A stretch of 64,000 bases of DNA from Perna viridis (GCA_037379345.1 CM074517.1:43752500-43816499), one strand, 5' to 3'. Shown: positions 14,962 to 62,344, numbered from the stretch's first letter. The notes: generated by a model from the letters alone, not told the origin. Made by a program: numbers and translations.

Positions 14962-15239
14962 CTTTGAGCCAGCCTATGCTGTGCAATGGTCCATGATATA
15001 TAAGACTGATTTTGTCTAAACTGAAACCAAGTGGTCCTCACATGAGTATGTTTTCTTGGGAGAGAATTCTTCCGTAAGTATACCACAGAGTTTCTCCTTT
15101 TCGGACTAGTTGGGCTAGCAGGAGTTACTGATAATCTCCTTTTAGAGTTTCTCCTGTTAAGAGGAGACTCCTCAAGCCTTTTAAAACTTTTAGCAGATCT
15201 GTTTCGTCCAAAGCAATAGGGAAATTTTTTTCTCACCAT
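14962..15239 (-). CDS. RASAL2: Alternative first coding exon (92 codons + 2 nt): MVRKKFPYCFGRNRSAKSFKRLEESPLNRRNSKRRLSVTPASPTSPKRRNS...HRLAQ(R)
   Basis: ATG in AAAATGG context, GC-richer open frame ending at AG|gtaata, phase 2 matching the 8713 acceptor (AG+A = Arg); basic/Ser-Pro-rich composition typical of regulatory N-termini. Confidence 0.75.
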
Positions 15240-15253
15240 TTTCCAACAATAGT

Positions 15254-15299
15254 TGATTAATTGATTGATTGTTTGGGTTTAACGTCCGAGCAGCAATAT
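15254..15299 (-). mobile_element. 46-bp 3' stub of a SINE/LINE with a perfect 10-bp target-site duplication
   Basis: Flanked by CAACAATAGT at 15244-15253 and 15300-15309; reverse complement ATATTGCTGCTCGGACGTTAAACCCAAAC(AATC)n matches 18053-18100. Confidence 0.85.
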
Positions 15300-17271
15300 C
15301 AACAATAGTATACAAGGCTAAATCTTTCCAAACACTACCGGTATTCTTTTAAATCCAACAATATAATAAAATTCACTTTTCTACATGGAAAATCAACTGA
15401 CACAAATACACACAACCAGAAAAATTTAGTTCTTACTGCGCAATCAATGTTAGTAAGTAAATAAGTTAAATAGATAGTTGAATCAGGATACAATTTTTAA
15501 TTTTTTTCTTATTTTTACACTAATCTCCCTGATCAGGATCCTGTTGTTTAATTTTACTTGCAAAATGTTTCATCTTCCTGTCCATATTAGAATTATATCA
15601 TATATATACGACTTCAGTCAATGGTATTAGTTTATATATGTATATACAACTGGACAAAAACAATACCTCAGAGAGACTTGGAGTCTACTGTGTGGTACAC
15701 TTGGTATTAGCCACTTGATGAAAAACAAGAAATAGTGGCACATGCCCATTTCTGATAACATATGACACAACAAATAAGTCACATTTAAATGCTTTTAGAA
15801 GAAAAAAATGCAACACCGAAAGAAAAACTACTGAATTCTATTCAATAAAACTTATACAAAACATGTGCAGATCCTGATATTTTAAAAAAGGGAGAGGGGG
15901 TTGCATGCTATTATTTACTCATTTATTGTCAAAATTTTTACAAATTTAGCATGGTAAATTTTCCAACAGAAAATTTACAACAGTAAATTTTCCAAAAGGA
16001 CAGATTCCAGCCCCTATAACTTGAACCCCCTGTACTTGCCACTGAATAGACGGAAGTGGCACAAAATAATAACCTGACTCAACCCTGTTTGTTGCATAGA
16101 AAAAGGTCAAGTAAGAGGTTCACCAACAATAATGAAAATTTCAGCCCAATTTTTACAGCAAATGACACTTTCCCTATATAAAAATTCCTTTCTCACAATT
16201 AACAACCAATATTGATGTACAGTATAAACCACAGTTTACATATAAGTATCCCATTGTTGTTGTTATATACAGAAACAATTGTCCAAAACCACAGGCGAAT
16301 GTTTATAGATAATAATTATTATAAATTACAGGAAAACAAGGTAACAAAAAATTTATTATAAGTGATTTGGCAAGACAGTTGATCGTGAGTTGTAAAGGTC
16401 ATGTTGAACAAATTATTCAGTAAACCAACACTGATACTAGTTTCCACCATTATTTTGCAGAGTCATACATAACAGTAGAAAGGATCTAAATATTAGTATG
16501 GATAAGTAGGTAATTTGATGCCGTTCTCAGCATCAGTACTTTTAAATGTCTTAAAAACATACCCTTCTTCATTTTAACACAAATGAGACACTTGATGATT
16601 TTAGAAAATAACCAGAGATTAACTGTGGTGTAATGGGGTTTTAGGACTTAGAGCTATTTGTAACCAAAGTAACTACTTAGTGATAATGCACCACTATGTT
16701 CTAGCAAGAATATTCAAGACTTTCTAGATCAACAACTCTACTCCTGCATTAAAATAAAGTTCAAAACAATCACTTGTACATTACGTACATCATTTCTGAC
16801 AGAGACGTTATGAACCATTCTTTCAGAGCCCTTACATCACTTATGCGCAATTCCTATGATATTCAATATCTATCTTTCACCCTCCTGCTTTAGTATGAAA
16901 TGGTTTAAGAAAAACACAGAATCACAATGTGTGTAACTTCATCTATCAAACATTCCTAAAACTTGTAGTATGTAAGTTCACATAAAGTAAGACAACTATT
17001 CCAGGAAATTCTAAGCTGTTATTCCCTGAAATTTCACCAATCTATCACACAGATAATAACTATTCTATGAATCCTGAGATCCTAAAGCTTAAAAAATCAA
17101 ACAACAGTTGCATCACCATTCATAAAAAAAAAAATTCCCCTGAAGCAAAATTATTGTGAGAGATCTGATCACATATTATGGTAGAAATATCAAGGTTCCA
17201 GTGATGACAATCCTGCGCTTTCCATACTCAATCTAAGACTTTCCAAACAAGACAACATAGATAATACTTAC

Positions 17272-17384
17272 GATTCATGGTCTGAGATATTGGAAGCTGC
17301 CCTCTTTCTGTCCACTTTCTCAAGTTTTGTAACACTTTTTGTCCGCTTTAAATTCCCTTTAAAGCCTTTCCGAATGAAGAAATT
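17272..17384 (-). CDS. RASAL2: Internal coding exon (113 nt, phase 0 in, phase 2 out): NFFIRKGFKGNLKRTKSVTKLEKVDRKRAASNISDHE(S); PH-region signature of nGAP/SynGAP/DAB2IP/raskol
   Basis: Acceptor ttactttgtttgcag, donor TC|gtaagt, open frame, diagnostic LKRTKSVTKLE motif. Confidence 0.93.
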
Positions 17385-18034
17385 CTGCAAACAAAGTAAA
17401 AAAATTCAGTTTTTTCTTTGTATTAAAATATTTTAAGGTTAAAAAATGCTGAACAAGGTACTTGAGTGATTAAATCTCAGTGTCAAGATGCTTTGTTTTA
17501 AGACTGACAAAACCTAGGTGTAAGAAAATGGGTCTTGGTATTTGCCAACAAAATACCTGTATGTAAAGCCTTTATCAAGTTCTTTGAAAGTTCAAATACA
17601 TACACATTGATTACAACAAGTTTTTCCGACCAGAATTTAGGACTTGGGTAAAAGGTACAAATCTTTGAAAGGGGGAGGTAATTTTGAAATTCCCTTTTAA
17701 ATGTACAAGAATGCATTGGTGAAAAACACAAATCAAGATGACTCAAAATAATGAAATTGTTATGCATCATTTAAACTATGTCAGCAGTACTTTCACACCA
17801 TGTAGAGTACAATACAACAAATTAACAAGACTGATCTGAAATCACCGTGCATGTCTGATTAAAGTAAATCTTCAATAAACCTGTGACTACTCTATTTCAA
17901 TGTAACCATTTGAGGATAAATAGCAATTCTTGTATATATATCTTGTGACAGACAGACAGACATATACACATCACAAAAGCCTCTCACCACCAATGGGTTG
18001 CAAAGCAATATCAAACCATGTTACCATGGAACCA

Positions 18035-18104
18035 TCGTCTGAATATAACTGAAATATTGCTGCTCGGACGTTAAACCCCAACAAACAAACAAACAAACCA
18101 AACA
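18035..18104 (+). mobile_element. 3' tail of the same retroposon family, ending in (CAAA)n
   Basis: AATATAACTGAAATATTGCTGCTCGGACGTTAAACCCCAACAAACAAAC; a more diverged copy lies at ~34620-34675. Confidence 0.7.
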
Positions 18105-22660: not shown

Positions 22661-22694
22661 GATAAAATTACATTAACTATAAAATTATACTTAC

Positions 22695-22807
22695 AGCAAT
22701 TCTGGACGGTGTGGAAGACGAAGTATCCATACTTTCTTGTTGGTTAATAGTTGGGACTAAAGGAACACTGCCTCTACGTTCATTGGGAATCTTCTCATAA
22801 GAGGCAT
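22695..22807 (-). CDS. RASAL2: Internal coding exon (113 nt, phase 1 in, phase 0 out): xASYEKIPNERRGSVPLVPTINQQESMDTSSSTPSRIA
   Basis: Acceptor tcttttcctctccag, donor GCT|gtaagt; joins in frame to 17384; SYEK/RRGS and SMDT..TP motifs resemble raskol/RASAL2. Confidence 0.92.
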
Positions 22808-22952: not shown

Positions 22953-23747
22953 TACAGTCAAACCTCGATGTGTCAAACTCTGAAGTCGAAATCTTGCATA
23001 ACTCAAACTCATTTGGCAGTTCTGTAAAAACTCCCCATAATCCAATAATAACAATAATAATAATAAAATCTTTATTTCAAGAGGGTTACACAGTTAGTTT
23101 ACAAGCTAATCTTCCCTCAGGCCCTCACACACAAAAACTATATCTACTAGAAATTAAAAATAAACAACACCACACAAAAACAAAAGCTGATTTGACAATA
23201 CCAAATCACTTTAAGATAATACAATATAGAACATTTTAAAAAAAGTGTAAGCAGCAACAATTTTCTCTTTTAAGATACTCTATTCAAAAGTGTTAAGGTA
23301 CTTCTTTAGAATGATTTTGAATGAGTTGTCAGTGGCTTGATTACGTAAATGTTTGGGTAACTTATTCCACAAGACAGACCCAGAATGTATGAATGAATGT
23401 CTGAAAAGTTCAGTTTTAATATTTGGGATTATCAAATTTCCTTGTTCAGCATTTCTTAGTGAATAAGGTTTGTTTCTTGAAACATAGTTAAACTTTTCTG
23501 ATATGTAGCTTGGTGCTTCCCCATGCAGTGATTTATAGATTAATAGGTATTTGTGATATTTACTCCTTGTTTCTACCTTCATGATTCCTAATTTTTTTAA
23601 CAAGGGTTCTGATGGAGAAAAAAAATACAATTTTACCTGTGATGACTTGAATTCAGATGAATCGAAACCTCGGATAACTTGAGGTTTCCAACCAGTCCTC
23701 TCAATATGTCTTCAAAGTTAATTAACTTTGATGTATCAAAGTTGACT
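22953..23747. mobile_element. Tc1/mariner(pogo/Tigger)-like MITE split by the LINE insertion (arms ~22953-23043 and ~23631-23747)
   Basis: TA-CAGTCAAACCTCGAT terminus, internal AACCTCGGATAACTTGA-type repeats on both sides of the LINE, degenerate inverted end ...CAAAGTTGACT. Confidence 0.55.
23044..23620 (-). mobile_element. 5'-truncated non-LTR retrotransposon (L2/CR1/Crack-like): ORF2 C-terminus, 3' UTR and (TTA)n tail
   Basis: ORF 23280-23630 encodes YKSLHGEAPSYISEKF..YSLRN..LIIPNIKTELFRHSFIHSGSVLWNKLP..SFK..LK, the typical post-RT C-terminus of this clade; ends ...GTAACCCTCTTGAAATAAAGATTTTATTATTATT. Confidence 0.88.
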
Positions 23748-25317
23748 AATTAGTGATAAAACTGATTGCTTTGTTACAAACCATGACTAAAGTTTGTTTT
23801 TACAATGTTTAGCAGTTTGTTTTTACAAAGTTTAGCATGGCTTATGTAAACACTTGTTGACACCTCTATGACAATTGTGTATTAATACAAAATAGCTTGT
23901 GTAGTTAAAGGAACGAATTTGATCACACTTTGAAATTCACATCAACAGTGATATCAGTATTTTGATGATCATAAAAAAATATTGATACATTTTATTTGTT
24001 AAAATGAAATCTGAACATTGAACTACACGCCAAACAGACAATAGCAACTGAAGTAATTCAACGACTACATTCGTCTCTCAAGTGAGTCTGAAATTTTATG
24101 GAAGTAATGACAATTACAAAGCAACATGTTATGTGTTCTAAAACATTTCGGAAGGAAAAAAATAAATAAAGAAAAGAAAAGAAAAGAAAAAGAAAAAGAA
24201 AAAAAAAGAATTTTTCCTGCAGATGTCACTCAGTATTCAAAATCTAATTGATATACAGCACACCAAAATTTTTTCTGATACATTGCACAAAACATCATGA
24301 TCTGATCAAAGTATTCTGGTTAAGGGAAGTTAAATGCAAGACAACAAATTGTCAATAATTTCCAGGTTTATTTGACCTCTGATGACTCCAACCTCAGATA
24401 ACTCTAACATTTTTGCCTTAAAGAGGTTTGACTGGTAAAACTCCATGGTGATCACAAGTATATGACAGAAGCTATAGACCCTGAGAATGCAATATTGAGT
24501 ACTTTTAGATAGGGGACAGAGGGGAATCAGAGTTCTAGAAGAGAATCTTTGACAGGTAACAAATGATAATATACAAGTTGGGTACAAGGTATGAGGCAGG
24601 AGTAGACCTAACATTTGTAGTGGTGATTAATTGACTTGGTAGAAATTAGAAATGGTATCATAAAATGACAATTTATGCCAAAGTCTTTCTTAACGTTGGG
24701 ACCATTTTTTGGAAAAAGGACCCAAATACTACAAAAAACTCAAATATTGCACCCGCAAAAATAACCGGCCTTATGGCATGTCTAAAGGGACCATTTTCCA
24801 TCAGACCAACTTACTGTAAGAACCAAATTCAGGAAAAAGGCTCCAGGTACTACTGGTATGTCTAATGTCTATATGAATCATTTTTATCAGGTTCAAGATA
24901 CTATGTCTATAAAAACCATTTCCCATTAGCATTTGGGGCAGAGGTACCATATCTATAGGAATGGTTTTCCATCAGGAGCAAGGTTCCAGTATTTTGAATA
25001 TCAGGATCATTTTCCAACAAAAGGAAGGTCATAGACACTATGTCTAAATTCTTCTGTATTAAGAAGATATGACTTTCACCAAATATTTTGTCAGTCACCA
25101 ATGTAAAAATCCCAAAATAGTGGATAAGAATAGACTACATAAAAATCACTGCATCAACTGCAGTAAAATAGTTTACTTTAATCAATTTTAACTGTTTCTC
25201 AGTCTATCTTGTAGTTCCTGCTCAAAACACTGTAAGTCTAACTCCTGTACAGTTCTAAAGTCAGTAGTGGTTATATAAAAGTAAAGTTCGGAAGTAAGTG
25301 CAGTAGACTAGTAAAGT

Positions 25318-25467
25318 AATACATGTACATGCAGTAGGCCGGTAACTTGTGGTTTAGCAATGATTGCAAGTAATTCTGCTGTCAATATAACAAATACATG
25401 TACATGCAGTAGGTCGGTAACTTGTGGTTTTGCAATGATCGCAAGTATTTCTTCTGTCAATATAACA
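25318..25467. repeat. 75-bp tandem duplication (2 copies)
   Basis: AATACATGTACATGCAGTAGG.CGGTAACTTGTGGTTT...GTCAATATAACA at 25318 and 25393. Confidence 0.9.
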
Positions 25468-26256
25468 CACCTTTTATAGATCTTAGGTTCACAATAAAAT
25501 TATTGGTAGAACACACCCAAAAATTGAAAAAAAAAAAAAAAAATGCAAGGTGCTGCTGGTCTATGGTATACCTTCTAGGGTACACATATTAACAGATAAG
25601 TTCAAAATTATGAAAATATCAAATAGCTAATGCAGAAAATTCCACAATATTAGAATTCATCGCAGACAAATAAAGAAAGGACATATCTTTATTTAAAACA
25701 ATTTCTTCCAAATTTTCTTCATCGCAAATTGAGCAATGTATGGGACAACTTTAATAAGCTTTAATCTCTAGGAGCTCTCCTTTTCCCTTAGATAATGTTT
25801 TTTTTTCCCAAATTCTAAGTGGGTGATTGAAAATGCACATGACTTTTTAACCACCAAGTAATGATTAAATTTCTGTGAAAGTGTTCCCGCCATTTAACAT
25901 TTCCAAGTTTTCTAAAGATTTCATGGGACAAACAGATTTTCCTCAAATGCTCTTGGAGATTACAAGATTTCTCCACTCTCAATGCTTAAATTTTAGATTT
26001 AACCCACAAGCAAGTGGGTTTAAATAAAAAATTTAACTATCTCGGAGAAATTTTGAAATCCCCTCGAGATTGAAGGAGAATCTATATACAACTAAACCCA
26101 AGGCAGGAATAAATTAAAGAGAAATAACTCCTTCACCCCCCAAAAAAATCAACCAGGTATGAAAAAAAATATGTATTCAAAACCTGACAGAAAAAAGTTC
26201 TGAATGAGTTACATCTAACCAAGACAACATCCAACTGAAATGAAACAACATATTCC

Positions 26257-26351
26257 ATGGTATGTAAGAATGGCACAGTGGTTAAAATTGTCACTTCTAC
26301 TACATGGCATGTAAGACTGGCACAGTGGTTAAAATTGTCACTTCTACTACA
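26257..26351. repeat. 47-bp tandem duplication (2 copies)
   Basis: ATGG.ATGTAAGA.TGGCACAGTGGTTAAAATTGTCACTTCTACTAC twice. Confidence 0.9.
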
Positions 26352-26812
26352 GAATTCTTTAAAACATTTTTCAAATTCAAGCATTACATTTGTAAATATT
26401 CACCAAAGCTTCACAAAAATTGGTGGCAGCATTTTTGGTATACCATACTATGTCCAGTCTAGACATGCAGGCGTACAAAACGTGCTGTATATATTTTAGC
26501 TGCCCAACCAAAACCTAGGCCTTCAAATTGTCAAGCACTTTGAATGAAAATATTTAACAATTTTCACTCTGTAAAAAAAAAGTGTGACTGAAACATTCTA
26601 TTGGGGATTCCAAATTCAAAAATTTCAACGATCAGTTAATTTTTGAATTACCCCCCCCCCTCCCCCCTAGGTTTATCAACTGTACTTAGCCAATTACATG
26701 TATCAGCATTAATAAGAGAGAAACAAACCATATACATGTAGTGGTGAGAATATCCATTCCTTTGATTTCCATTTTTTGAGTTTATCTGTGAAGTACTCAT
26801 CCTGCCTCTCAC

Positions 26813-26894
26813 TTATTAAGTTCCTTTTAGAAAACCTCCTCTTAGACTTCCTCTGAAGACAAGAAGGGAGACAATTCCCTTTGAGACAGTTCAT
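26813..26894 (-). CDS. RASAL2: Candidate alternative first coding exon: MNCLKGNCLPSCLQRKSKRRFSKRNLI (phase 1, joins 22807)
   Basis: AAAATG start, 82 nt to donor ATAA|gtgaga, correct phase 1; Cys cluster plus polybasic stretch. Confidence 0.6.
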
Positions 26895-29004
26895 TTTAAT
26901 CCAGATTCTGGTAGGTAACTAATTTTTTATTTTCTTTAAACCCCAGTTAGCATTCTCCAAAATGTTTCCTTTTCCACACATATATGACAATTTGAAATAG
27001 TATTTAGGATTCAACAACTGAATAAAAAGTCACTCCATTTCTAATAATTGCCAGAATATTTTTATCTATATATATATGGTAGTTCCATGAGTGTTCTAAC
27101 TTTCATATGTCAAATTGAGACGAACATTGGGACCAAGCCTTTGAAGTTACCACACATGACAACTTTCTCCATTTATCTTTATCAGACACATCACACCTTT
27201 ATTTTTTTAAAGATTTGACCGCATTAAATCCATTAAACTGAAGTTCCGTTTTAAAATAGTGTTAAATTCATTTCATTTCAGATATGTACACAAAACAACA
27301 ACTTGTAATCTCCTAAGAAGATCTATTTTCAAATGCAAAGTTGTCTCTGTTCATTGACTATATCATCTCATTCAATTCTTTTTCTTTTTTAGTTTTCGGA
27401 TCGGTAATACCTATCATTTCCTCTTGAACTCAACATCACCACTGACATTTCCTGATTGATTTTCCTCATCTAATTAAATAATTCAGTCATTTTTAAAAAT
27501 TCTTTAAACAATAACCTGATGAAACTTCAAAGTTTATTTAACTTCCTTTAAAAGAAGATTATCTATTTCTAAATGTGTAAACACATTTATTACCTTAACG
27601 AGAACTAATTTACTCCTCAAAACTTGTCATAATTCTGTTTTGATTTATGACTTTTAAAGTCTAGCAGACTATCCCCAATTAAATGCAATTTGACAGGTCA
27701 TATAATGTATATCTAGTGCACCCTGCCTGCAAAGGCATGTTACGGGTAAATAAACAAATACACAAGCGTCAAATATAACATTGCACATTTCAGACACTGA
27801 TTTTTTTGTCCTACTATTGATCTAAAAAGACGGAATGATATCACTACAAAAATAACCTGTCTTCCTCTTTCAGGTCAAATCACCACACAATAAATGGACA
27901 GTAATAGCATTTAGAAATGCTCAAAACAAAACTGAAAATTAGTATTGAATTGATCATAACTGAGTTTATGCTGGTCTCCGTTTCTAATCAATGAAAAGTC
28001 CGCCAACAAGTTGTATAAATCTTCCCATAAGCATGTGTGAACTAAACAGAGAAACTACTTTAATATTAATGGCATTACTTTGTTTCAGATGAAATACAAC
28101 AGGGTGTCGATTTAGCAGTAAATAAAGATATTATTTCAGTAGCTAATGGCTATTCCTAGAATTAGGGCATCTATACATGAATTGGTTTCTTTTCCTTATT
28201 TTATGTGAACAAATATCATCAATAAATCATAATAGAAAAACAGAGATAAAACATGAATCTATGTGTCTACCATTATGTATGTCAGATGGGAAAAAATTTG
28301 GGAGGGGATTTGGGTTCATAATTCCTTTCCTTAGCATTTTAGTATCAGGGGACCATAAGTCCCTTCAAAATTGATCTTTCAGACTTCACTAAAATCTAAT
28401 AAAGGCCAATGAACTTTCTTTAATTGATCAGACGGATCAATTTTGAAGAAATTTCAATGTTTGCCGTTGTATTATAAGCAATACACACTATGGTCAGTCA
28501 TATTAACTGTACAGTTTGATGATGTACCTTTTAAGATAGAGTTAGTTTCATGGTTTTGATCATGCATCCTATGTGAGTTCCATGTATTTGACCTTCCTTG
28601 TTACTGACACCTTGACACCAACAGTCTAAATTTGACAAGAAGTAACAAATTTTGTTCAAAACAGGTTGCAATGATTGAAATAGAAGAAGTTAAGGTAATA
28701 AAGTATAAATCATTGGGGAATCTTTTTTGTGCTTTTAAAAAAGGCCCTTTGTTCTAACTTACACAGTTGAAAGTCCTAACTTTTTCCAAGTTTCAAATCA
28801 ACTAACCACAAGAAGAAAACCAAAAGTCCACAACAAAATGTCAAAGAGAGGAGGTTGAAGGTTCAGGATGGAAGTAAATGAAATTTCAAAGGTCCCATGT
28901 CAGAATTTGAAGGTCCAAGAATTTGGACCCACCATAATTTTAATCCCTGAGGCCTAGTGCACTTGTCATTGCCAGCTATAGTTCTACAAGTAATTGAAAC
29001 TTAC

Positions 29005-29047
29005 CTGCCGTCCCAAAGAGTCCTTTTAATAGTTTGACAATCCACAT
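29005..29047 (-). CDS. RASAL2: Candidate alternative first coding exon: MWIVKLLKGLFGTA(D) (phase 1, joins 22807)
   Basis: AAGATG start, consensus donor CAG|gtaagt, 43 nt = phase 1; G+AT gives D-ASYEK, matching the D-x-SYEK I recall in raskol. Confidence 0.7.
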
Positions 29048-30721
29048 CTTGGATAAAAGATAGAATTGTCAGGGTTACATTGACATATATATTGTTCTCA
29101 TTCAACAGTTATTTCTATATCACAGATAAATCCTAGCTAAGATTTTTTAAATAGAAACAGTTTTTTTTTTTTTTTCACAAATTTTAAGGCTAAAGTGCAT
29201 CTATTTAAAAGTCATCACTTTAAAACCTCAAAATTCTACTTTTCTCATCTCAAATATATTCTCAGTAGGAAAAAATAATGTTGATCTTTAGTATCTTTCT
29301 TTCCTACGTCTCAGCTCATGCTACGACTAGACAGGTCTATATATACAAGTCAGAGACCATGGCTAACTATAGTCTATCCCAACACTATCACTTATATATG
29401 TTGTTCTCATTCTCATGAATCAATGATCAAAGAAGTTGCAAGTACTTAAATCGATAAAAAAAAACATACATCCAAAAACAATGACCAATACCCTGAGGTC
29501 ACTGCACTTTCTTGGCTTTGGAATGATTCAGACTCCCCCCACAACAATGGAAACCAAGACACCACAAGTCAATCACAAATCCAAATGAAAACAATCAAAT
29601 CTGATCTGGTTGTTCATTAGGAAAATAGGAGAAGTAGAAACATTTGACGAGGTGTCAATAACAGGTTTAGAGTACCACCAATACATAAACATCTAATCTG
29701 GAGTCAGAGGTAAGCAATGGATAGATAACAAGCCATCAATCAGCTGAAATCTACATCATCTGGTGAAATCTATGATCCTGCTTGTTACTTCACTAAACAC
29801 TCACTGTTGTTCTTGGCTTATTGTAACATTGGTAAATTGATGTTTTTTCTTGTACAGGTGTCCTTCCTCACCTAAGATCACTTAACTTTATTGATGGGTT
29901 TTAAATGTTGCTTTTTTTTAGTTTTACACAATATATATTATTTCCAATCAATTTCCTTATCTGCTAATGTTGTAGCATGTTGACAGAATATAAACACTGT
30001 CTCTTTTTTCCCCTCTAGAAAAGAAATAAATCTTTTTTGTGTTTTGAATTCCCTGGTATCAAAAAGGCACTGCTTCAGATATTTCATAATTCTTATTTCA
30101 GTGTTAAGAATGCAAAAATTCAGAACTTAAATCAACACATTCAATCCTAGAAAATATGTCTGGAAATGCACATTTTGAGCTCTATATTTTCATTTCGAGC
30201 AGAAAAACAGAAGTTTTAATTATCACCTTACTGCCAAAAGCATTTCCATAACAGGTTCCACAAGTAGCTCTCGACTTCCTAACAAATCATCCCAACTGCA
30301 ATTATAACTCCATTAAGAAGACATAATGGAATTTCCATGCATAGAAACAAAAGCCAATGAATCGCCAATCACATTTGTATGCAAAACGTTTATTCCTTAT
30401 TAGTCAATTTAAACATTCATCAATTTTGTATCTGATTTCTTGCTTGGTAAGAGAATTTACTGCAAAAGCTTTAAGCTTGCCAGTGTCATTCTGGTTTATA
30501 TGTACTGGTATATTTCCCCTTTTTATATTATGAATTTGCATAAATTAGTCTTGTGTATCATTTTTCTTAGCAACTAATTGTTTGACATACTATCATTACA
30601 CAAATTATGGATGAATGAAATTGTGGCAATTTGCAGATGAGTAAAACTATAGTATCAGAAAATTCATCCACAGCAATACAAGTTTCATGTTCCATTTGCA
30701 CAATTTTTATTTAAACAAGCA

Positions 30722-35185: not shown

Positions 35186-35740
35186 AAAATCACAGTCTGA
35201 CCCCTATGTTCTATTTTTAGTAATGGTTGACGTATTCTTCAATGGATCAAAAATCCCCACATCAGTTCTATGTAGGAAACTCCAAGGAACATTCACACCA
35301 AGTTTGATTCCAATTGGTCAAGTAGTGTAAGAGAAGAAAATTTTTGAACGAAATAACATTAGCAAAAAACGTCGAAAAAGGGCAATAACTCTAAAATGGC
35401 ATAACAGATTAAAATGGAAATTTGACCACACATAGTTCTTATCATGCTTAACAGTTTTACATGGTCAGAATTTGGCTAAACCTAACGGTTTTGGAGATAT
35501 ATGCGAAAAACTACTGTCTGACCCCTATGTTCTATTTTTAGTAACGACGGCCATGTTTTTCAACAGATCAAAAATTCCCACATCAGTTCTATGCAGGATA
35601 CCCCAAGGAAAATTCATACCAAGCTCAGTTCCAATTAGTCAAGTGGTGTCAGAGGAGAAGAGTTTTGAAAAAATTGTTAAGACGATGGACACAAAGTGAT
35701 AGCACGAGCTAAAATGGCCTTTGGCCAGGTGAGCTAAAAA
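34801..35740 (-). mobile_element. Helentron-associated non-autonomous element (HINE/DINE-1-like), apparently complete
   Basis: Subterminal inverted repeats GCTCACCTGG (34828) / CCAGGTGAGC (35724), terminal hairpin AGGCTCC-CA-GGAGTCT, A/T-run insertion site, internal repeated blocks (~35119-35345 and ~35474-35670), internal (TA)n. Confidence 0.8.
35139..35182. repeat. (AT)n microsatellite inside the HINE-like element
   Basis: About 22 AT units where the paralogous blocks have only GAGATATATGC. Confidence 0.95.
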
Positions 35741-41676: not shown

Positions 41677-41739
41677 TAAGTATTCTTTTGATGAGAACTT
41701 GTCCTCTGTGGTCTGAGTTTTGATGGAGCCGACTCAAGT
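41677..41739 (-). CDS. RASAL2: Internal symmetric exon (63 nt, phase 1-1): xLSRLHQNSDHRGQVLIKRIL
   Basis: Acceptor tattttgttttgtttcag, donor TTA|gtgagt, length divisible by 3, open in phase 1. Confidence 0.75.
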
Positions 41740-42002: not shown

Positions 42003-43770
42003 AACAAGGAGCTCACAGGAGCCTGAATTGTCCACCTGGTTGAATTTTACCTTTCAAAGGCAATAAATTTAACAAGAAGTTGTCCAACAATTTTGACTAA
42101 AGAAGTCTCAGAATTGTCAATTCAGGACATGGAGTTTCACAGGAAAATATATTGAATCTGCTCAGGTAAGCGTTTTATTTCTGTTTGTGACCATGTAGAT
42201 ATTTCTGTCATTGTATGGCGTGTCGTACAGGCCTTTAGTTAACTTCTCACGTGGCGGGTCAGTCTATGGTTTAAATTCCATTTTTGAGTGAACATTTAAT
42301 TATTTTGGGTTAATTTATTTGTTTCAGGGGTTTTTCCTATCCAGTTTTGTGCTCCATTTTGAAGGAAACAACGTATATATTGTCAAATGCTATCATCCTA
42401 GTTTTTGACACAGATATACCTAAATACCATACGTTAATGTTAGTTTTGTACGGTGTACGACGACCCATATTTCCGCAATTTAGCGGATGCTGTAATATTT
42501 ATAGTCAGCGATAGTTGGTGTTAATTTCGCTGGAATGTTGTATTAATATATCCTACAGTTCTATTTGTTACACAGTGATATTTGCTGAACTTAGTTTTCC
42601 GTCGGTGTATATGGTGAAATGTTGAAATATTGTGTGGAAGTTCAGCACAAGAATTGTGTTATTTACTTCTGAAATTTATATTGGCCTGAAGGTGTGTATT
42701 TGGTCAATTTGAATGACAAATTGTGTTGATTTATAAGAGAAATGAAAATTACAGTGTGCCATGAGAATCAGAAATGAATATATATTGAAATAGTGAAATT
42801 TAGTTTGAATTTATATAGAGAAAGTCTACAGAAATTGTTGCGTCCTAGACCCTGACCGTTGATTATGGTGTACCGTAGGAGCTATGGTGAGAGGTGATGA
42901 CTGAATGGATCTATTAGATTTTACTACACCAATTTTTAGTCTGTTTACTGTATGTGAACTGTGACTTCTGTTTGCTTACATACTTTCATTTGCATGCCCA
43001 TTTATTTATGTTCATTTGCATGTTGTATATATGTTTTGTTTTGTTTGATTTGTTCAGTTTATTTAGTTTTAGTATAATATTATTTTTACTTTTGTCTCTA
43101 TGAATGTTGGCCAACTGACAATCTGACTAGCCTACGTCTTTACAACTTATCATAAGATCTTTTCAACAATTGAAAGTTTCTTTTAATCTACCATAGTTTT
43201 CAAGATATTGACTGAAAACTGTTAAAGAAAAAAAAGTCATTTTTCCCCTTTCAAGTGCAATAACTCTCACAAGGAGTCATCTGCCAACTTTTATCCCTGA
43301 AGACTTTTGTAGTCCTAATAACATGGACCATTGCAGCTATTGAAAGAATTTGGCTAAACCTAATGGTTTTGGAGATATATGCGAAAAACTACTGTCTGAC
43401 CATTATGTTCTATTTTTAGTAATGGCTGCCATGTTGTTTTTTTTTGACGGATCAAAAATCCCCATAACAGTTGTATGCAGGATACCCCAAGGAACATTCA
43501 TACCTAATTTGGTTTCAACTGGTCAAGTAGTGTCAGAGGAGAAGATTTTTGAAAGAAATAACATTAAAAATAGCAAAAATCATTGAAAAAGGGAAATAAC
43601 TCCAACATTGCTTAATGAATTAAAACCAAAATTTGACCAGAGATAGATCTCATCATGCTAAACGCTTTTATTTTGTCAGAATTTGGCTAAACCTAACGGT
43701 GTAGGAGATATATGTGAAAAACTACTGTCTGGCCCCCCCATGTTCTATTTTTAGTAACGGTGGCCATGTT
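42003..43770 (-). mobile_element. Second, truncated copy of the same HINE-like family, interrupted by a ~1-kb nested insertion
   Basis: 42003-42108 and ~43135-43770 are collinear with 34801-35560, sharing AACAAG..CACCTGG and GGCTAAACCTAACGGTTTTGGAGATATATGCGAAAAACTACTGTCTGACC-type blocks. Confidence 0.8.
42109..43125. mobile_element. ~1.0-kb non-autonomous DNA-transposon-like insertion nested in the HINE copy
   Basis: Absent from the paralogous copy at 34801; imperfect TIRs CAGAATTGTCAATT / AACTGACAATCTG; reversed A/T skew and more CpG than the flanks. Confidence 0.65.
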
Positions 43771-49865: not shown

Positions 49866-49925
49866 CTGGCAAGCTTTCATTGCAGTTGTCGAGGAGCCTG
49901 GACCTGTACATCCTCTCTGGTGTCA
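49866..49925 (-). CDS. RASAL2: Internal symmetric exon (60 nt, phase 1-1): xTPERMYRSRLLDNCNESLP
   Basis: Acceptor aatttttttttcag, donor CAG|gtatga, GC-rich island in AT-rich DNA, open in phase 1. Confidence 0.78.
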
Positions 49926-56548: not shown

Positions 56549-56756
56549 TTAAGTACCCTTAAAACTTTGATTACTAAAGGTTCATTGAAGTCATATATAA
56601 CTAATGGTAGTTTGAATATAACATTCTATGTTAAGTATGTAATAAAAAGTTTTAGAACAATAATAATTTTTTTCAATATCTATATGCAAAATTATGAAAA
56701 TGTAATTGTCAAACACTAGTAGAAATGTGTCCTGTAGGACACTGTTTATCAGCCCT

Positions 56757-56862
56757 AAATTTCAGATTTTTAGTTAACAGGAAGTCAATGTGAAACCATG
56801 GTAACAGGAAATTTCAGATTTTTAGTTAACAGGAAGTCAATGTGAAACCATGGTAACAGGAA
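56757..56862. repeat. Perfect 52-bp tandem duplication within a degenerate dispersed repeat
   Basis: AAATTTCAGATTTTTAGTTAACAGGAAGTCAATGTGAAACCATGGTAACAGG at 56757 and 56809. Confidence 0.92.
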
Positions 56863-57195
56863 CAAAAATGACAGTTTGTGATGTTTATACTGCACATTAA
56901 ATCATTTCTATGTTTTCAACTTTTAGCAAATGAAAATCAACCGTCCCATGGATCAGAGATATCATCCAAGGTACGGTACTGTAAATTAGTAAAACAATGT
57001 CACAGTGTTCCAGGATTCCACTTTCCCGTCACCCAAGGCAAGTGAAGTTCTGGCATGGGAAAGTTTATAATTATGCCACACTTTCCCTTCGACAAGTAGA
57101 AAGCTTGAATTTTTAAAGATTTGTTAAGATTGGAGAGCAAACTACAGTGTGGGAAAGTTAATCTTCATTTAGAGTTTTCCTGTGGAAACCTAATC

Positions 57196-57458
57196 CTATA
57201 GGGGCAAATATTTTTCACGTGAAATTCATGTTAATTGAGCTTCACATGAAATTCATGTGAAATTCACATGAAATAAACATGATTTTCATGTGAAATTCAC
57301 TAACACAAATTTCATGTGAACATTTCATGTGAATTTCATGTGAAGGCTCCATTCACCCGAATTTCACATGAACTCTGTCACTTAGTTTATTTGCTCAATT
57401 CAAGTGAAATCATGTGTAATTCGTGTGAAAATCATGTGAAATAATTTTGCCTGTATAG
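57196..57458. mobile_element. Foldback-like MITE: ~26-bp TIRs enclosing an array of TTCACATGAA/TTCATGTGAA decamers
   Basis: CTATAGGGGCAAATATTTTTCACGTG vs reverse complement of the right end CTATACAGGCAAAATTATTTCACATG; more than a dozen internal decamers in both orientations. Confidence 0.7.
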
Positions 57459-60400
57459 AATATTGAAATGATGATGCTGTTGCATTTATACAGCATGATA
57501 TACATATTTCATAGATTTTTAAGAGGTAATAACCAACTGGCTACTATTAATTCTAATTAATACTATTAATTAATCAACAGAAATAATGATTTCAAGATTT
57601 GTGCCAGTTTATTTTTTTAATCAGACATCAAAAACCAACATTGGCTGGGAATACTGATAACCATGAGAAATGTTGATATGATACACATTTTATTACAGTA
57701 AGTGTTTCATTATGACTTTAATCAAGGATGAGTTCATGTCTGTATGTGACAAGATAAACTACCCTGGTATCAAAATCTTGATGTTATAGGTGTAATACCA
57801 CTATTTCAGAAACCAGTCACCTGCACATACAATAAAGTAGTTCGTAATGACATGAAGCAGTCCCAAAGTTGCACCCTATCACTCTCCTTTTTCAGTAGAG
57901 GTATACAAATTTGGTGTCATCTGAAAGCTAAATGAATCAACAATACTCTAAAAACTTCATTTTCTTTATTCAGCCTAGGGTAAAACAATGGGAACTCAAT
58001 GTCTTATCCAGAAATTGATGAAAAAGGGGGAGGAGGTTTCCAGGCAAAAATGTACCGATTTTTGCCCTCCCTTGATCCATCAATGAATGGCATACTCTGA
58101 TGAGGGTTTTAATTTGGAATATTATGGTTAATTAGATTAAAGTATAAATATTACTCTGTGTGTTCTTCACAAAAATATTATCTACTGACATGTAACAGCT
58201 TTATTATTTAATATAATAGATAAATAAGAATGCCCTGTTTATACACAACATACAATCGAAACTAAATACTAGTATCACCTGGATTTAAAGCCATAAATGT
58301 TGGAGCTACTTATAAAATGTCTTTTTTGTTTCTTACAATTTCTACAGATATTATGTTAAAATTAGGGTGAAATATCTTACGATTTGATCTAAATTTGGTT
58401 TAAAACACACAAAAAACAGACAAAAGCACTGTAAAACTATGTAAATGACATGTTTACACCAGATTTCAAGAACAAGATAACATCAAAATATTTAAAAATT
58501 AACAATCTTTTATGGAGATCTCCCTGGATAAAAATACACCAAATCAATGTCTCATTCAAATAAGGACTGACCTTTTTTTTTGTAACTTTTTAGGCCACTG
58601 GTACATTAACATAACACATAATTTCAAAACTATGAGCTGTTCTTTTAGTTTCTACCAAATTATATTGACTAACAGAAAAAAAATGTTTTAGACTGTGGCT
58701 TAAACTGCTTCTCTAACAATAACAGGTTCTATATTACAATACAAAATAACTTCATAGAGAAAGTAGACAAAATTTAGAGAAAACTTTGTTTATCTGGCAC
58801 AAAAGTTTGTGACAAGAAGAGACTTATGCCTGAAACACATTTTTGATACTTCCCATGGTAAGGCAAAATTTATAACCCTTAAAGATAACTTTTCTATATA
58901 TATACGTTTTCAAGGGGACAAAATAAGTTCAGCTTTAGAACAAGGCCTTAATGTAGAATTAGCCCTTTGTACCCACAAGAAGCATACTTGTCCAGAATAA
59001 CATTAAGTAATGACATATTTAAGCTCTTTAAAAAAGGATCAAGAACTATAAGTTCTGATGGAATGTGAAATAAATCCAACAGTTTTAACATTTCAAATTA
59101 ACATATACTAGATCACTGAAAAGTACTAAAGTTTTCAACCACAAAAAATATGTACACATCATGACAAGGCAATAAAGTTTCTAATGTGAAAGATGCAAAT
59201 TTTCAAACTTTAAATAGCTTTAAAAGTGTAAGCATACCTTCAGGAATGCTAGCTAAATGGTCCATGCTCCTACTTTTCCTTTTATCATGCTTTTTCACAG
59301 AACTAGTCTTGCTTCTCAAGCAGTGCATCTTTGAGAAAATATTTCCACAAAAATTTTCACATAAGAAGATCTATGTTAAAGACGCCATTAAGATAAATCT
59401 GGCAAGGTAACCTATATTTAAAGATTTTTAAGTTCGCTGGAGTATTTTATGGTATAGTGATCAACAATGGTCGCTACTTGTACTTGCATAAACGTTTGTG
59501 ATGTTTAATATTTAAATTTCATACAGGTACCTGCATACCATGTACTTGTCAATTAAACTGACATTATAATGTCAAAAGTTTTGGTTACAGAGAACTTTGA
59601 AATTCAAAACATAATTTACTTCAATTGAAAACAAACATGGTATGTTTAATGTTATATGCAGAGGATGCAAGTTGTGCAGTTTACATTTTTGCAAAAATGT
59701 TACAGGATCATCTTTAGAAATGCTAATACATTTTGCACTACACTTGAAGTCCATTTGTATTTTTTTTGCATTTATGAAAAAATGCCAAAGAAATTCTATA
59801 AATAAAATTTGATCTTATATAGCTGAAGTCATAAGTACCAATATTTTCTACATATTCTTGGTAATGAAAACTACAACAATACAGAAAAAGTAAAAAATCC
59901 CTTAACCATTTGCTGAAATTTATTAATAGATATAATAGAAAAACAAAATAATGAAAGTGCCACAGTGACAATTTCTAAGGTGATTAAGCTTTTACATCAG
60001 TTGCGGTAATGCAATGAATCTGGAAAAAAATGATCAGTTTTTTTGCCATTTAAACACTTGGCATGAACATTATAAATCCTCTACTCCAGAGGGAAGTTAC
60101 AATTCAATAATAAACCTGAACACAACAAAATCTGACAGAAATTGACTTTAAATGACTGTAAATGACAAGGTTTGATATTTAAATTTTAAAGATTGAAATA
60201 CACTTTGCCACCCACTTCCATTAAAAGTTCATAATTGCTACCAACAACGTGGGAACCTGTAACATTGAGTTTCAGCTGGCCAAACAAACCAACTTCTTTA
60301 TTCTTTCATTTTGTCCCTGTAAGACCACCTGATCCATGAAAGGAACACTTATTTATTTTTCCATAATTTCTATGTAATAGCTATAATAGCAACACATAGT

Positions 60401-61862
60401 AAATCTAACTAATGACAAAAGTGTAAAGCCTGGACATGACATGTTTATCCTAATATAAGACTACAAGATTCTGAGAAGAATCAATGATTTAATCATAAAT
60501 ATAACTTAACATACAAAACCACCGGGGTCTGATGTTAGAGGTTGCCCTACTGCTTTGGATAAGTAGAAGTTAAATCACACTTATCCAAAGGACAACCTAA
60601 TTTAATGATGCATTTTTCAACATGCAATTACTTAACAACAGTTGTTTTCAATTAGGACCAGTTAAACCTTCATCTACTTGCCCATCAGCATAAGATTCAC
60701 AAAATATTTATTTCCAAAAACTGCAAGCCCCCCGCCCCCCTCCTACACACAACCCCTCAGAACCGAATGGTCGTCCCTTTAGATATATGTTGGTTTTATT
60801 ATTAATCTTTGGAAGTAAAGTAACAGCCACCCTAAAGCACATGGTAGGCATGTCTCATTTTTCAGCCTTTAATTTTAATGTCTAATAACATTGATATGGA
60901 AAAATAAAAAAAACAACCAAAATTAAAGGGAGTTACCTCCCATTCAGACAAAACATTGTACTAAAATTAATCAAAATTCTTTAAACATTTTTTTCTTTTT
61001 AGTAATATATGATAAGTGAACTGACAGATGCACGGACAAACATTGGTACACTATATCGTTCAGTAGGTAATTTTCACAAGGTGCTACCGTAATTTTTGTG
61101 TATTTATGCCATCTGTCTAAAAATGTGCAAAAATTTTACGCTGGGTTTAAGTACTCAATGCAACACTTAGCATCCACCAATATAAAAAATGCCAAAAATT
61201 TTTGTACACCTTTTTACTTCAAAATCCCAATTTTACACCCAACATACAGTAATACATCTGTCATTAACAGGCAAATAAAAATACAGGTTCAGTTATAATA
61301 GCAATACTTTTATTACTGCAAGAAAGATGCAAAAAGCCTGTCATTGTAATGAAAATATCCATATCACAATACTTTCTTAATTTACAGAAGTGGCAACAAT
61401 TTATTATTGGCTGAAGGGAAGGAAGGAAGGAAAGAATAGCCCTATTCGATAGCCTGAGTGTCCTGAAAGGAAGATGATATGATACAGCTAAACATTCATT
61501 TTACTACCATGTTATTAATACTCTTAGGGAAGAATGCATATTAGACAAATTTTATTTGGGATGACCCCCTAAAACATATTTAGAAAAAAAAAAAAACAAA
61601 TACAGTAACATTCATCTAGAGAAGACAATTCATATAAATTTCATTGGGGAAGACAACCCCTAAAAATGACACAGCTTAGAAGAAAAAACTAAATTAATTT
61701 CTATCACAAATGCAATTAGAACTCTTTCATATAAATTCAGATACTGCAAATGGTAGAAGGGATTAACATGAAGAGAAGATACTACCAAACTGTTTTTTTT
61801 CCTACATATGCTATATTTTGATGTAACAATAGTACTTTTAGTAGTTAGATCTTTATTTTTTT

Positions 61863-62092
61863 TTTTTTTAGAAAATCATACATTCATCTCCCACTTAGTC
61901 AATCTAATCAAGAACAATAACTCTTGCAAAGTACTAATTTCATACACAATTTATGTAATTTCTAACTCAAAAGTACAAAAACCAAATAATGAATTGAAGA
62001 CTGTTACTGTTTCTAAATAAGAATAAAAGTAAATGTGATTGGATTTTAACTAACATGAATCACCTTTTGTCTGATTTTTATAAAGACTGATG
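61863..62092 (+). repeat. Dispersed repeat, copy 2
   Basis: Collinear with 50990-51247. Confidence 0.8.
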
Positions 62093-62310
62093 ACTGATAC
62101 TTAAATGTTTCAATTATCATTGCTGTCATGATCTCTCTCTATTCTTGTAGGTGATAATTCTAAAATTTGGAATTCCCTAAACCTCAGAGACATCTTTAAA
62201 TATCTGAAACAGTCAGCAACTAAAAATGGTATTACACAGATTTAAATTTATCTTACCCAGTACACCAGGAACTTTTAATAATTCAAAATGATAAAAATTA
62301 AGGATCTTAC

Positions 62311-62344
62311 CTAAACTATATTTCTTTGATTTGTGAAAAAACAT
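62311..62344 (-). CDS. RASAL2: Candidate distal alternative first coding exon: MFFHKSKKYSL (phase 1); a second in-frame donor at 62257 extends it by 18 aa
   Basis: AAAATG start, donor TAG|gtaaga at 62310 and TGG|gtaaga at 62256, both phase 1; CpG-containing non-repetitive sequence upstream (62345-62710). Confidence 0.5.

Follow-up and report, generated by a model that had tools for sequence, protein, structure and literature searches.

A single RasGAP gene of this mussel has several alternative first coding exons, and we consider it highly probable (about 0.85) that they reflect nested promoters, each with its own ATG-containing first exon spliced into a few common entry exons of one SynGAP/DAB2IP/RASAL2-type gene. 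The window, that is, the whole stretch of DNA analysed (64,000 nt), covers the 5' two-thirds of this minus-strand gene, which is longer than 116 kb. An RNA junction (26729>22807) and N-terminal peptides (here called heads) that match Mytilus show 5' exons that exclude one another, carry an ATG each and are spliced to a common exon. Four heads are orthologous to annotated or assembled transcripts of other bivalves; at least five are supported, with up to seven in the window and more beyond it. The sequence-only reading had proposed at least four alternative first exons on one RasGAP gene. Several do exist, supported by orthology for head 1, the RNA junction for head 3 and Mytilus matches for the heads at 59328 and 10928, but the list was incomplete, missing the latter two heads and the long-isoform start above the window.

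Gene identity and entry exons

Domain searches and comparison with orthologues showed that the gene is a SynGAP/DAB2IP/RASAL2-type RasGAP, the invertebrate counterpart of SYNGAP1/DAB2IP/RASAL2, whose domain set comprises a partial PH domain, a C2 domain, a RasGAP catalytic domain and a DAB2P_C coiled coil. On the gene's own exons, Pfam reported PF25321 (PH_RASGAP) on the PH exon at 6.6e-30, PF00616 (RasGAP) on two exons at 7.7e-07 (29.6 bits; cut-off 28.3 bits) and 1.5e-05, and PF12004 (DAB2P_C) at 2.6e-17. The catalytic motifs MRGNS and FLRFLCPAIMSP were found in open stretches, which contain ...TMRGNSIGTKAMEAYMKLVGEK and ...ISASIFLRFLCPAIMSPSLFNL, the arginine finger and FLR motifs of a RasGAP domain, and the RasGAP exons run colinear with the RasGAP domain of orthologues. 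The C2 exons were located by tblastn with orthologues whose own C2 passes Pfam; searched singly, the gene's own C2 exons, each too short, fail Pfam. The C-terminus ...EFKTSSC is the same as in orthologues, and exon-by-exon identity to the DAB2IP-like protein of Mytilus californianus is 78-92%. The exons that give the RasGAP identity lie beyond the window.

The acceptors 49925, 22807 and 8713 are genuine exon starts of the RasGAP gene, and the chain 62311>49925>41739>22807 was derived from orthologous transcripts and models. The entry exons and their neighbouring exons are as follows.

49866..49925, minus strand: e2, (V)TPERMYRSRLLDNCNESLP; first entry point, taking head 1, the 59328 head and, in other bivalves, long-isoform exons
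41677..41739, minus strand: e3, DLSRLHQNSDHRGQVLIKRIL; skipped in (absent from) some scallop and oyster isoforms
22695..22807, minus strand: e4, the SYEK exon, (N/D)ASYEKIPNERRGSVPLVPTINQQESMDTSSSTPSRIA; common exon, second entry point
17272..17384, minus strand: e5, NFFIRKGFKGNLKRTKSVTKLEKVDRKRAASNISDHE + TC; common exon
8603..8713, minus strand: e6, (S/R)STFVGSLKRTMSLGRLTRKRNRQNPVSEDLQGSNQR; 111 nt, third entry point, skipped in transcript P0172
6325..6369, minus strand: 45-nt exon of cassette type, (L)VSDCAIAAPENKST + TG; downstream of e6 and upstream of the PH exon

Oyster, scallop, Mya and ark-shell-like isoforms have a 'C.C..TP.N..TW' cassette to which the 6325..6369 exon is similar; spliced to the PH exon of this genome, the 6325..6369 exon would give the split codon TGA. 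The long-isoform exons lie upstream of the window at about 78161, 71223 and 69841; in scallops, such exons enter e2. Pfam makes no PH call on them; by analogy with the vertebrate proteins, they may be the first half of a split PH domain.

The following first exons were placed upstream of these entry points (a slash marks the splice site).

62311..62497, minus strand: first exon 1; 5' UTR of about 153 nt, ATG 62344, MFFHKSKKYSL + G, donor G/gtaaga, phase 1, joining 49925
59238..59328, minus strand: alternative first coding exon; MHCLRSKTSSVKKHDKRKSRSMDHLASIPE + G, donor G/gtatgc, phase 1, suiting acceptor 49925
29005..29047, minus strand: candidate first exon 2; MWIVKLLKGLFGTA + G, donor CAG/gtaagt, phase 1, suiting acceptor 22807
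26729..27664, minus strand: first exon 3 as transcribed; leader from at least 27664, ATG 26894, 55-aa head MNCLKGNCLPSCLQRKSKRRFSKRNLISERQDEYFTDKLKKWKSKEWIFSPLHVY + G, donor 26729/gtttgt, joining 22807
14962..15239, minus strand: candidate first exon 4; 92-codon basic Ser/Pro-rich ORF + AG, donor AG/gtaata, phase 2, suiting acceptor 8713
10867..10928, minus strand: alternative first coding exon; MSLRLCKSEICLSQKPRCRL + AG, donor AG/gtatgt, phase 2, suiting acceptor 8713

In the proposed mechanism, transcription would start at several nested promoters, each bringing its own first exon and ATG, so that each head would have its own promoter. Exon e2 (49925) would receive, besides the long-isoform exons, the first exons that encode MFFHKSKKYSL (62344) and MHCLRSK (59328); e4 (22807) would receive those of the Cys-cluster/polybasic head (ATG 26894, donor 26729) and probably of MWIVKLLKGLFGTA (29047); e6 (8713) would receive those of MSLRLCK (10928) and possibly of the 93-aa head (15239); and the PH exon would receive further heads downstream of the window.

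First exons supported by orthology or RNA

Orthology and a transcript 5' end argue solidly that head 1 is real. Its peptide is the N-terminus of Mytilus edulis X5/X8, M. californianus X7, M. trossulus X7 and the Logan transcript P0172, and near-identical peptides were found in scallops, Mactra, Sinanodonta and oyster. In a transcript of a related mussel (L009), the 5' UTR is colinear with 62497-62345 upstream of the ATG, and the 5' end is a block of about 45 nt nearly identical to the genome.

The head at 59328 matches the N-terminus of M. californianus isoform X6, MHCFRSKTSSVKKNNRRSRSMDHLDCI/VTPERMF, by tblastn, and its exon has a GC content of 0.41 against 0.29 in the flanks. The head that feeds the 8713-type exon in Mytilus is the MSLRQSK exon, and its counterpart lies here at 10928, which scores 44.5 against the head of M. 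edulis X20 and M. galloprovincialis VDI55048.1 (MSLRQSKSEAFLCRQSKCILRN/TFVGSLKR); the runner-up among 65359 windows scores 24.5. Three further Mytilus heads that were scanned (MLKASVRESVFRGINSSAEMR, MDSNGNGSNFLAVLPGINVINFW and the M. trossulus X6 head) gave no convincing counterpart on the gene strand.

Head 3 is solidly established by a spliced RNA junction in contigs from two studies. RNA contig mapping covered one 6-kb stretch with exons 2 and 3 in four RNA-like runs, and over this stretch 26729>22807 is the only junction seen in RNA of this species. Contigs X1 record 6 and X2 record 16, from the two studies, span 26729-27212 and 26729-27457 with zero mismatches and then continue into exon 22807, matching the reverse complement of its start exactly; contigs X3 and X9 likewise span 26.8-27.6 kb. 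The proposed ATG, open frame and GT at 26813 are present, but the donor used in RNA is 26729, so the junction is not 26813>22807 and the head has 55 aa. Donor 26813/gtgaga was ruled out as the main donor because every contig reads through it.

The Cys cluster and polybasic character ascribed earlier to head 3 were confirmed: MNCLKGNCLPSCLQRKSKRRFSKR has 3 Cys in its first 12 residues and 9 K/R in its first 35, and MHCLRSKTSSVKKHDKRKSR is of the same kind, with Cys near the N-terminus beside hydrophobic or basic residues, the sequence pattern of S-acylated anchors. The exon is homologous to the M. trossulus X8 head, and its C-terminal half is conserved in a Mytilus coding model; the Cys-rich start is missing from the single Mytilus (M. 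trossulus) model found for the exon, P0193. Exons 3 and 4 are each single-copy in their own genome and are therefore not repeat ORFs. Neither the 61-aa frame of exon 3 nor the 92-aa frame of exon 4 gave candidates in a 5.8-billion-protein set among proteins of 0.55-1.75x the query length, the only ones visible; because of this limit, full-length relatives of either could not appear.

Candidate first exons 2 and 4

Exon 2 probably is a real first exon, as judged from scallops (MLLLKYIRGLWD/SSYEK; Argopecten X13, Ylistrum X4) and Mya X1-X5 (MMLINFFKRLFFN/TSYEK), whose heads at this splice position are similar. Against these scallop and Mya heads, the peptide ranks 1/2949 among Met-started 12-mers and 2/126951 among all 12-mers of 144 kb. 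The ATG, open frame, GT and phase 1 proposed at 29047 are present, but the junction 29005>22807 lacks contig depth, which is zero over 28901-29300 in all four RNA-like runs. The amphipathic-helix pattern that had been seen in this head (MWIVKLLKGLFG) found no support: its hydrophobic moment is not above that of shuffled composition (0.40 vs a shuffle mean of 0.26, sd 0.13; 15% of shuffles as high). For the similar scallop and Mya heads, the moment was matched by 10% and 24% of shuffles.

Exon 4, encoding the 93-aa head, possibly enters e6 as a first exon, as its composition suggests. At 15239 the ATG, the open frame, the basic Ser/Pro-rich make-up (K+R 26%, S+P+T 25%, hydrophobic 27%, where other intronic ORFs have about 50%) and the phase-2 GT all stood as proposed, but no homologue was found: local blastp against 238 fetched N-termini returned noise only, and Pfam returned nothing. 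Its GC content is 0.40 vs 0.31 in the flanks. By codon usage it has the highest coding score of 67 ORFs, a score that is not decisive because it is barely frame-specific. A genome-wide repeat adjoins the ATG at 15248-15300.

Weighing of alternative explanations

All four ATG frames that had been put forward, with their GT and phases (62344-62311, 29047-29005 and 26894-26813 in phase 1; 15239-14962 in phase 2), are present, but an ATG-to-donor design by itself is at chance level: counts of ATG-open-frame-GTRAG units in the window are 31 for the minus and 30 for the plus strand, and the next 21 kb hold 25 loose mini-ORFs of this type. Exon 2 and especially exon 4 may thus be chance ATG...GT frames in AT-rich intron, the real heads being only those with Mytilus counterparts or RNA, and we put this just short of even odds. 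The phase-2 GT after exon 4 is AGG followed by the stop TAA; such a GT arises whenever the final codon of an ORF ends with G and the stop begins with T, and as the pattern occurs in 5/19 minus-strand ORFs of at least 60 aa, it is a cheap coincidence. The missing homologue and weak frame specificity of exon 4 point the same way, as does the MSLRQSK counterpart at 10928, and for exon 2 the zero RNA depth and the close runner-up 12-mers (15.5 and 14.0 vs 16.5). However, with the proven exon 3 and a transposon ORF set aside, no other long intronic ORF combines an exon-like GC content with a make-up as basic, rich in Ser/Pro and non-hydrophobic as that of exon 4; exon 4 leads the coding scores, and Mya X6 and Dreissena X5 have long basic heads; exon 2, chosen blind to the scallop and Mya heads, ranks first among Met-started 12-mers and has the correct intron, phase and consensus CAG/gtaagt donor. 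For exon 3, it is unlikely that the transcript is mainly regulatory or non-productive, an RNA with a long leader from an intronic promoter or a transposon, whose upstream ATGs block 26894. The leader is at least 770 nt long with 23 upstream ATGs, no fewer than the roughly 14 estimated from composition, its GC content (0.29) is intron-like, and the same RNA runs are rich in transposon-like pieces from near exon 3; because of these ATGs, translation from 26894 may be weak. Against this, the exon joins exon 22807 precisely and in the coding frame (phase 1), its ORF begins at the first ATG behind a stop and stays open, and a Mytilus coding model shares its C-terminal half. The contigs end at 27457-27664 with no upstream splice, and shorter leaders may exist because contig ends do not mark the start site.

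A further question is whether the peptides themselves carry information. From their sequences, we infer that the heads could route the RasGAP to different membranes or tissues: those in which Cys3 or a Cys cluster sits beside Lys/Arg runs would be S-acylated membrane anchors, which could compensate for the conserved N-terminal region unique to the long isoform, and promoter choice would be tissue-specific, by analogy with SYNGAP1 and C. elegans gap-2. The heads may instead be by-products of promoter choice, with selection acting on the place and time of enzyme production and the peptides holding no address information, which we rate somewhat below an even chance. Most heads are short, fast-evolving and different between lineages, the M. 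trossulus model of exon 3 lacks the Cys cluster, headless isoforms start at an internal Met (MSLGRL... in Mytilus X11, Argopecten X18 and Magallana X18), the amphipathic moment of head 2 is not significant, and the difference documented for gap-2 is one of cell-specific expression. Such a view fits poorly with MFFH[KR]SKKYSL being almost unchanged across distant bivalve orders, or with the way Cys-cluster/polybasic heads (Cys clusters with K/R runs in oysters, Mizuhopecten, Littorina and P0016) and MG...S heads (Biomphalaria, Logan transcript P0175, Lineus) recur at one and the same splice position among bivalves, among gastropods and in a nemertean; mammalian SynGAP has an N-terminus that modulates its synaptic effect (PMC3621422). 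At the other extreme, and rather doubtful, the heads of lophotrochozoan SynGAP/DAB2IP orthologues would form an old conserved address code that places a PH-incomplete RasGAP on different membranes, with the 93-aa arm as a young addition of the mussel lineage. Its three recurring parts would be the near-invariant MFFH[KR]SKKYSL, a putatively S-acylated Cys-cluster/polybasic head and a 12-residue hydrophobic-Lys head (M-hhh-K-hh-K/R-G/R-L-F/W), each preserved over hundreds of millions of years at one and the same entry point in different bivalve orders and, in part, in gastropods.

Comparison with known systems

The same gene and entry exons are found in Mytilus edulis, M. californianus, M. trossulus and M. 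galloprovincialis, where it is named 'ras GTPase-activating protein nGAP-like' or 'disabled homolog 2-interacting protein-like'. Mytilus and this mussel share the heads MFFHKSKKYSL, MHC[FL]RSKTSSVKK... and MSLR.(S/C)KSE..., and exon 3 and the 5' extension of the PH exon are shared as well; the 15 of 89 Mytilus cluster members listed contained neither the Cys-rich start of exon 3 nor the MWIVKLLKGLFGTA or 93-aa head. RefSeq isoform numbers reach X20 in Mytilus edulis, X14 in Mya, and X18 in both Argopecten and Magallana. The idea that this gene has an expanded promoter set of its own was therefore abandoned, the same heads being already in RefSeq for Mytilus (up to 20 isoforms) and many isoforms being listed for scallops, oysters and Mya. 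Since annotations of Mytilus and further bivalves already contain the same layout, and mammals and worms are known to have it, the finding is sound but fairly ordinary, and the layout of the mussel RasGAP gene brings no new principle.

Of the human genes in this subfamily, SYNGAP1 is linked to intellectual disability, and DAB2IP and RASAL2 are tumour suppressors. PSD-95 (MDCLCIV...) and GAP-43 (MLCCMRR...) carry N-terminal S-palmitoylated anchors, and MNCLKGNCLPSCLQRKSKRR and MHCLRSK... are like them in having Cys3 or a Cys cluster in the first dozen residues with hydrophobic or basic neighbours, a resemblance in sequence alone, without homology. The heads offer simple peptides for membrane-targeting tests.

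SYNGAP1 belongs to the same RasGAP subfamily, and McMahon et al. (2012; PMC3621422) describe starts more than 10 kb apart and unique N-terminal peptides on a common core. As stated there, SynGAP A, B and C arise from separate promoters, the N-terminus modulates function, and C, the shortest form, is without a complete PH domain, in agreement with the earlier statement that alternative promoters of SYNGAP1 give N-terminal isoforms with differing function. Unlike SYNGAP1, the mussel gene has more heads, which cannot be aligned with the mammalian ones, and several of them have Cys/polybasic motifs, unmentioned for SynGAP N-termini in the cited part of PMC3621422. The SynGAP-family gene gap-2 of C. 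elegans is likewise one gene with many isoforms and isoform-specific first exons (PMC11168454), although its heads are unrelated in sequence, and cell-specific use has been shown in the worm: the g/j-specific first exon is expressed only in the ADE neurons (one pair), and variants there alter behaviour (PMC11168454). N-terminal isoforms alter function in mouse and worm, and this picture is broadened by the mussel gene, for which at least five heads have support. Because some mussel heads are conserved across bivalves and have lipid-anchor-like motifs, our results suggest that multi-promoter N-terminal diversification is an ancient trait of this RasGAP family. For annotation, the analysis yielded corrected exon coordinates and two heads missed by sequence reading alone.

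Extent and identity of the gene

The analysis covered the window and its surroundings, 60 kb on the lower side and 20 kb on the upper side (negative positions lie below the window); no N stretches were met. The exon chain was obtained by tblastn with the Mytilus californianus isoform X6 and with P0172, a Logan transcript protein of a related mussel. In the window it runs on the minus strand through 62344-62311, 49925-49866 (e2), 41739-41677, 22807-22695 (e4, the SYEK exon), 17384-17272 and 8713-8603 (e6; 111 nt, skipped in P0172), and then to a PH exon. The acceptors at 49925, 22807 and 8713 are each preceded by a polypyrimidine tract and AG. None of the catalytic exons lies inside the window.

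Exons of the gene outside the window
About 78161-78126 (L008 about 4126-4161), minus: long-isoform exon
About 71223-71095 (L007 7095-7223), minus: long-isoform exon
About 69841-69662 (L007 5662-5841), minus: long-isoform exon
About -21400, minus: PH exon
Below the window, minus: C2 exons
Below the window, minus: RasGAP exons with MRGNS and FLRFLCPAIMSP
Below the window, minus: Ser-rich exon, 1.4 kb
Below the window, minus: coiled-coil exons, end ...EFKTSSC

The exons were used as queries singly. When the gene's own exons were searched with Pfam, one matched PH_RASGAP (6.6e-30), two matched RasGAP and one matched DAB2P_C (2.6e-17). The PH exon, used in a profile-free search, retrieved full-length relatives; a word search started from one such relative identified them as nGAP-like, DAB2IP-like and SynGAP-like proteins of many molluscs. 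The closest relatives are Mytilus proteins, with 78-92% identity exon by exon; the comparison of Mytilus isoforms covers 15 of 89 cluster members.

The long-isoform exons (peptides MNCLYQGWLQTW..., ...PVIPWEPWFIILRQDLKTLTCHKTE and ...VRLDDGKTEFDRRWGYETLAIIQENAEHQEVDYPRVTC) carry the conserved motifs GWL..W, FCVL..DLKTLT.H and EFDKRWGYETL, and in scallops they are spliced into an e2-type exon. Their position above the window means that the start of the gene is not included in the window and that its total length exceeds 116 kb; the exon at 62344, which had been read as the first, is an internal alternative start. As in the vertebrate proteins, we take the GWL...FCVL... region to be the start of the split PH domain; Pfam made no PH call on this region.

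First exons at 62344 and 26894

The sequence-only reading had proposed four first exons, and their open frames, peptides and following GT are all present on the minus strand in the phases claimed.

Proposed first exons
62344-62311, minus: MFFHKSKKYSL, phase 1
29047-29005, minus: MWIVKLLKGLFGTA, phase 1
26894-26813, minus: start MNCLKGNCLPSC, phase 1
15239-14962, minus: 93 aa, phase 2

An ATG-to-donor design is, on its own, no evidence for a first exon: units of at least 30 nt with an ATG, an open frame and GTRAG occur 31 times on the minus strand of the window and 30 times on the plus strand, and a further 25 units in phase 2, counted with loose donors, lie in the next 21 kb. The candidate start codons of the window, six in all, have A at -3 throughout (AAAATG, AAGATG, AAGATG, AAAATG, AAAATG and GAAATG), mildly above the expectation from composition.

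The exon at 62344 is a real first exon. Its peptide is identical in M. edulis X5 and X8, M. californianus X7, M. trossulus X7 and P0172, and near-identical heads (the short N-terminal peptides of alternative first exons) were found in scallops (MFFHRSKKYSL), Mactra (MFFHKHRKYSL), Sinanodonta (MFLHRSKKYSF) and an oyster model (MFFTRSKKYKL); in every one of those proteins, e2-type sequence follows. The 183-nt 5' UTR of the P0172 transcript (L009) is colinear with the genome upstream of the ATG to about 62497. A block of some 45 nt at its 5' end (...TTTTCCGCGGGTATTTGAACAAAGTGTTAATT..., window 62450-62497, minus) is nearly identical in the Perna genome and the related-mussel transcript and is a candidate core-promoter or leader element; the remaining 5' UTR has diverged between the two. 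This is a single first exon with a conserved start region.

The exon at 26894 is also a real first exon, with a donor other than the one proposed. RNA contigs from four RNA-like runs (X1, X2, X3 and X9; same organism, four studies) were compared over 23301-29300. Two of them, X1 record 6 (26729-27212) and X2 record 16 (26729-27457, in a 1095-nt contig), match with zero mismatches and then run into GTTCATTGGGAATCTTCTCATAAGAGGCAT, which corresponds exactly, in reverse complement, to the opening 30 nt of exon 22807. The splice, 26729/gtttgt to 22807, is GT-AG, and this spliced junction shows that the runs hold cDNA. The claimed joining of the 26894 exon to 22807 was thus borne out, but its donor at 26813 was read through by all contigs, and 26729 was used instead. 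This gives a head of 55 aa (MNCLKGNCLPSCLQRKSKRRFSKRNLISERQDEYFTDKLKKWKSKEWIFSPLHVY, followed by D-ASYEK), homologous in its second half to the M. trossulus X8 head (...SKRLKLDEVHDIYLPDIYLKRKAASWTFSPLYIHT, then DASYEK); the Mytilus model of this exon begins downstream of the Cys-rich part. Runs X3 and X9 also cover 26.8-27.6 kb and X1 extends to 27664; the leader is at least 770 nt long with 23 ATGs, and the ends of the contigs need not coincide with the start of transcription.

The frames at 29047 and 15239

The 29047 frame is a probable head. The scallop isoforms Argopecten X13 and Ylistrum X4 begin with MLLLKYIRGLWD followed by SSYEK, and Mya X1-X5 with MMLINFFKRLFFN followed by TSYEK; these short heads have the same pattern and the same splice target, the SYEK exon, which lies 3.2 kb downstream of the head in the Mya locus and 6.2 kb downstream of it here. 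Scored against the scallop and Mya heads, MWIVKLLKGLFG ranked 2 among 126951 12-mers in 144 kb and 1 among 2949 Met-started ones, with a score of 16.5 and close runners-up at 15.5 and 14.0. The donor is the consensus CAG/gtaagt. The four runs gave no RNA contigs over 28901-29300, and such contigs show presence, not absence. The amphipathic-helix reading of the peptide was not supported, as 15% of shuffles attained its hydrophobic moment.

We regard the 93-aa frame at 15239 as a possible head, with the odds somewhat against it. The frame is single copy, with a GC content of 0.40 vs 0.31 in the flanks, and its composition (K+R 26%, S+P+T 25%, hydrophobic 27%) differs from that of other intronic ORFs, which are about 50% hydrophobic. 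Its coding score was the top of 67 ORFs, and its frame specificity is weak. The phase-2 GT after the frame consists of AGG and then the stop TAA, an ending shared by 5 of 19 minus-strand ORFs of at least 60 aa. No homologue was found among the fragments or the 238 fetched N-termini, and there was no Pfam match. The roughly 50 nt adjoining the ATG upstream (15248-15300) recur elsewhere in the genome, with at least 42 further copies at 87-98% identity, and look like the end of a dispersed genome-wide repeat. The Mytilus head that feeds the 8713-type acceptor is another exon, with its counterpart here at 10928.

Additional heads and a probable further start

The list of four heads proved incomplete, as two further exons match heads of Mytilus isoforms.

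Additional heads
59328-59238, minus: MHCLRSKTSSVKKHDKRKSRSMDHLASIPE, donor G/gtatgc, phase 1; matches the M. californianus X6 head, which joins an e2-type exon
10928-10867, minus: MSLRLCKSEICLSQKPRCRL, donor AG/gtatgt, phase 2; matches M. edulis X20 and M. galloprovincialis VDI55048.1, whose head joins the FVGSLKR exon

In the Mytilus head scan, the 10928 head scored 44.5, and the runner-up 24.5. The open stretch MVSGFHRLLSLPAGFHERIEDWFEIVTFPFR (L003:8549-8662, minus; window -21338..-21451), immediately before the PH exon acceptor, shows strong conservation with three sequences (M. edulis X14, Tegillarca KUTeg_001168 and an oyster fragment), and this conserved 5' extension points to a further alternative start.

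Proposed arrangement and precedents

Nested promoters probably supply three entry exons, which receive the heads, in the window (e2, e4 and e6), plus the PH exon below it. A later entry exon means a larger loss of the conserved N-terminal region, and the GWL...FCVL... region is present in the long isoform only. Judged by their peptides, several heads look like lipid or membrane anchors and may act as the address labels suggested earlier. Heads with Cys3 or a Cys cluster beside K/R runs were seen here and in oysters, Mizuhopecten, Littorina and P0016, and heads with an MG...S start in Biomphalaria, Lineus and a gastropod-like Logan transcript.

This alternative-first-exon architecture is the known one of the SynGAP/DAB2IP subfamily. 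For SynGAP A/B/C, regulation that depends on the promoter is documented, as is modulation by the N-terminus (PMC3621422), and use of a gap-2 first exon is restricted to certain cells (PMC11168454). The architecture is already listed in RefSeq for bivalve relatives (Mytilus isoforms up to X20, Argopecten and Magallana X18, Mya X14, plus others) and is not new. Modestly new are the exon coordinates, corrected for this genome, the demonstration in RNA of the junction at 26729, and the recurrence of three head types at fixed entry points across bivalve orders.

Other elements in the locus

A cassette-like exon of 45 nt with good splice sites was found.
6325-6369, minus: (L)VSDCAIAAPENKST+TG

Isoforms of oyster, scallop and Mya, and ark-shell-like ones, have a similar cassette ('C.C..TP.N..TW'), but none of the Mytilus isoforms examined (15 of 89 cluster members) carries it. 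The PH exon of this genome begins with A, and a junction with it would create the split codon TGA; in mussels the cassette may be a dead or poison exon.

The stretch 23280-23900 holds a transposon-like ORF (116 aa, ...LFRHSFIHSGSVLWNKLP...). Each of the four RNA-like runs has numerous short contigs, of high depth and with slight divergence, over the ORF and its surroundings, which marks an expressed repeat family within the intron. Two similar plus-strand ORFs (MAKPNGFGDICEKLLSD.YVLFLV...), at 35472-35699 and 43350-43586, lie 8 kb apart, opposite to the gene, and probably derive from a single repeat. Between e6 and the PH exon, the intron contains a long tandem repeat (L001, -2293..-2921, minus) with a 187-aa open frame of LALPLSxVLFSVxESCFLRAVLLV units.
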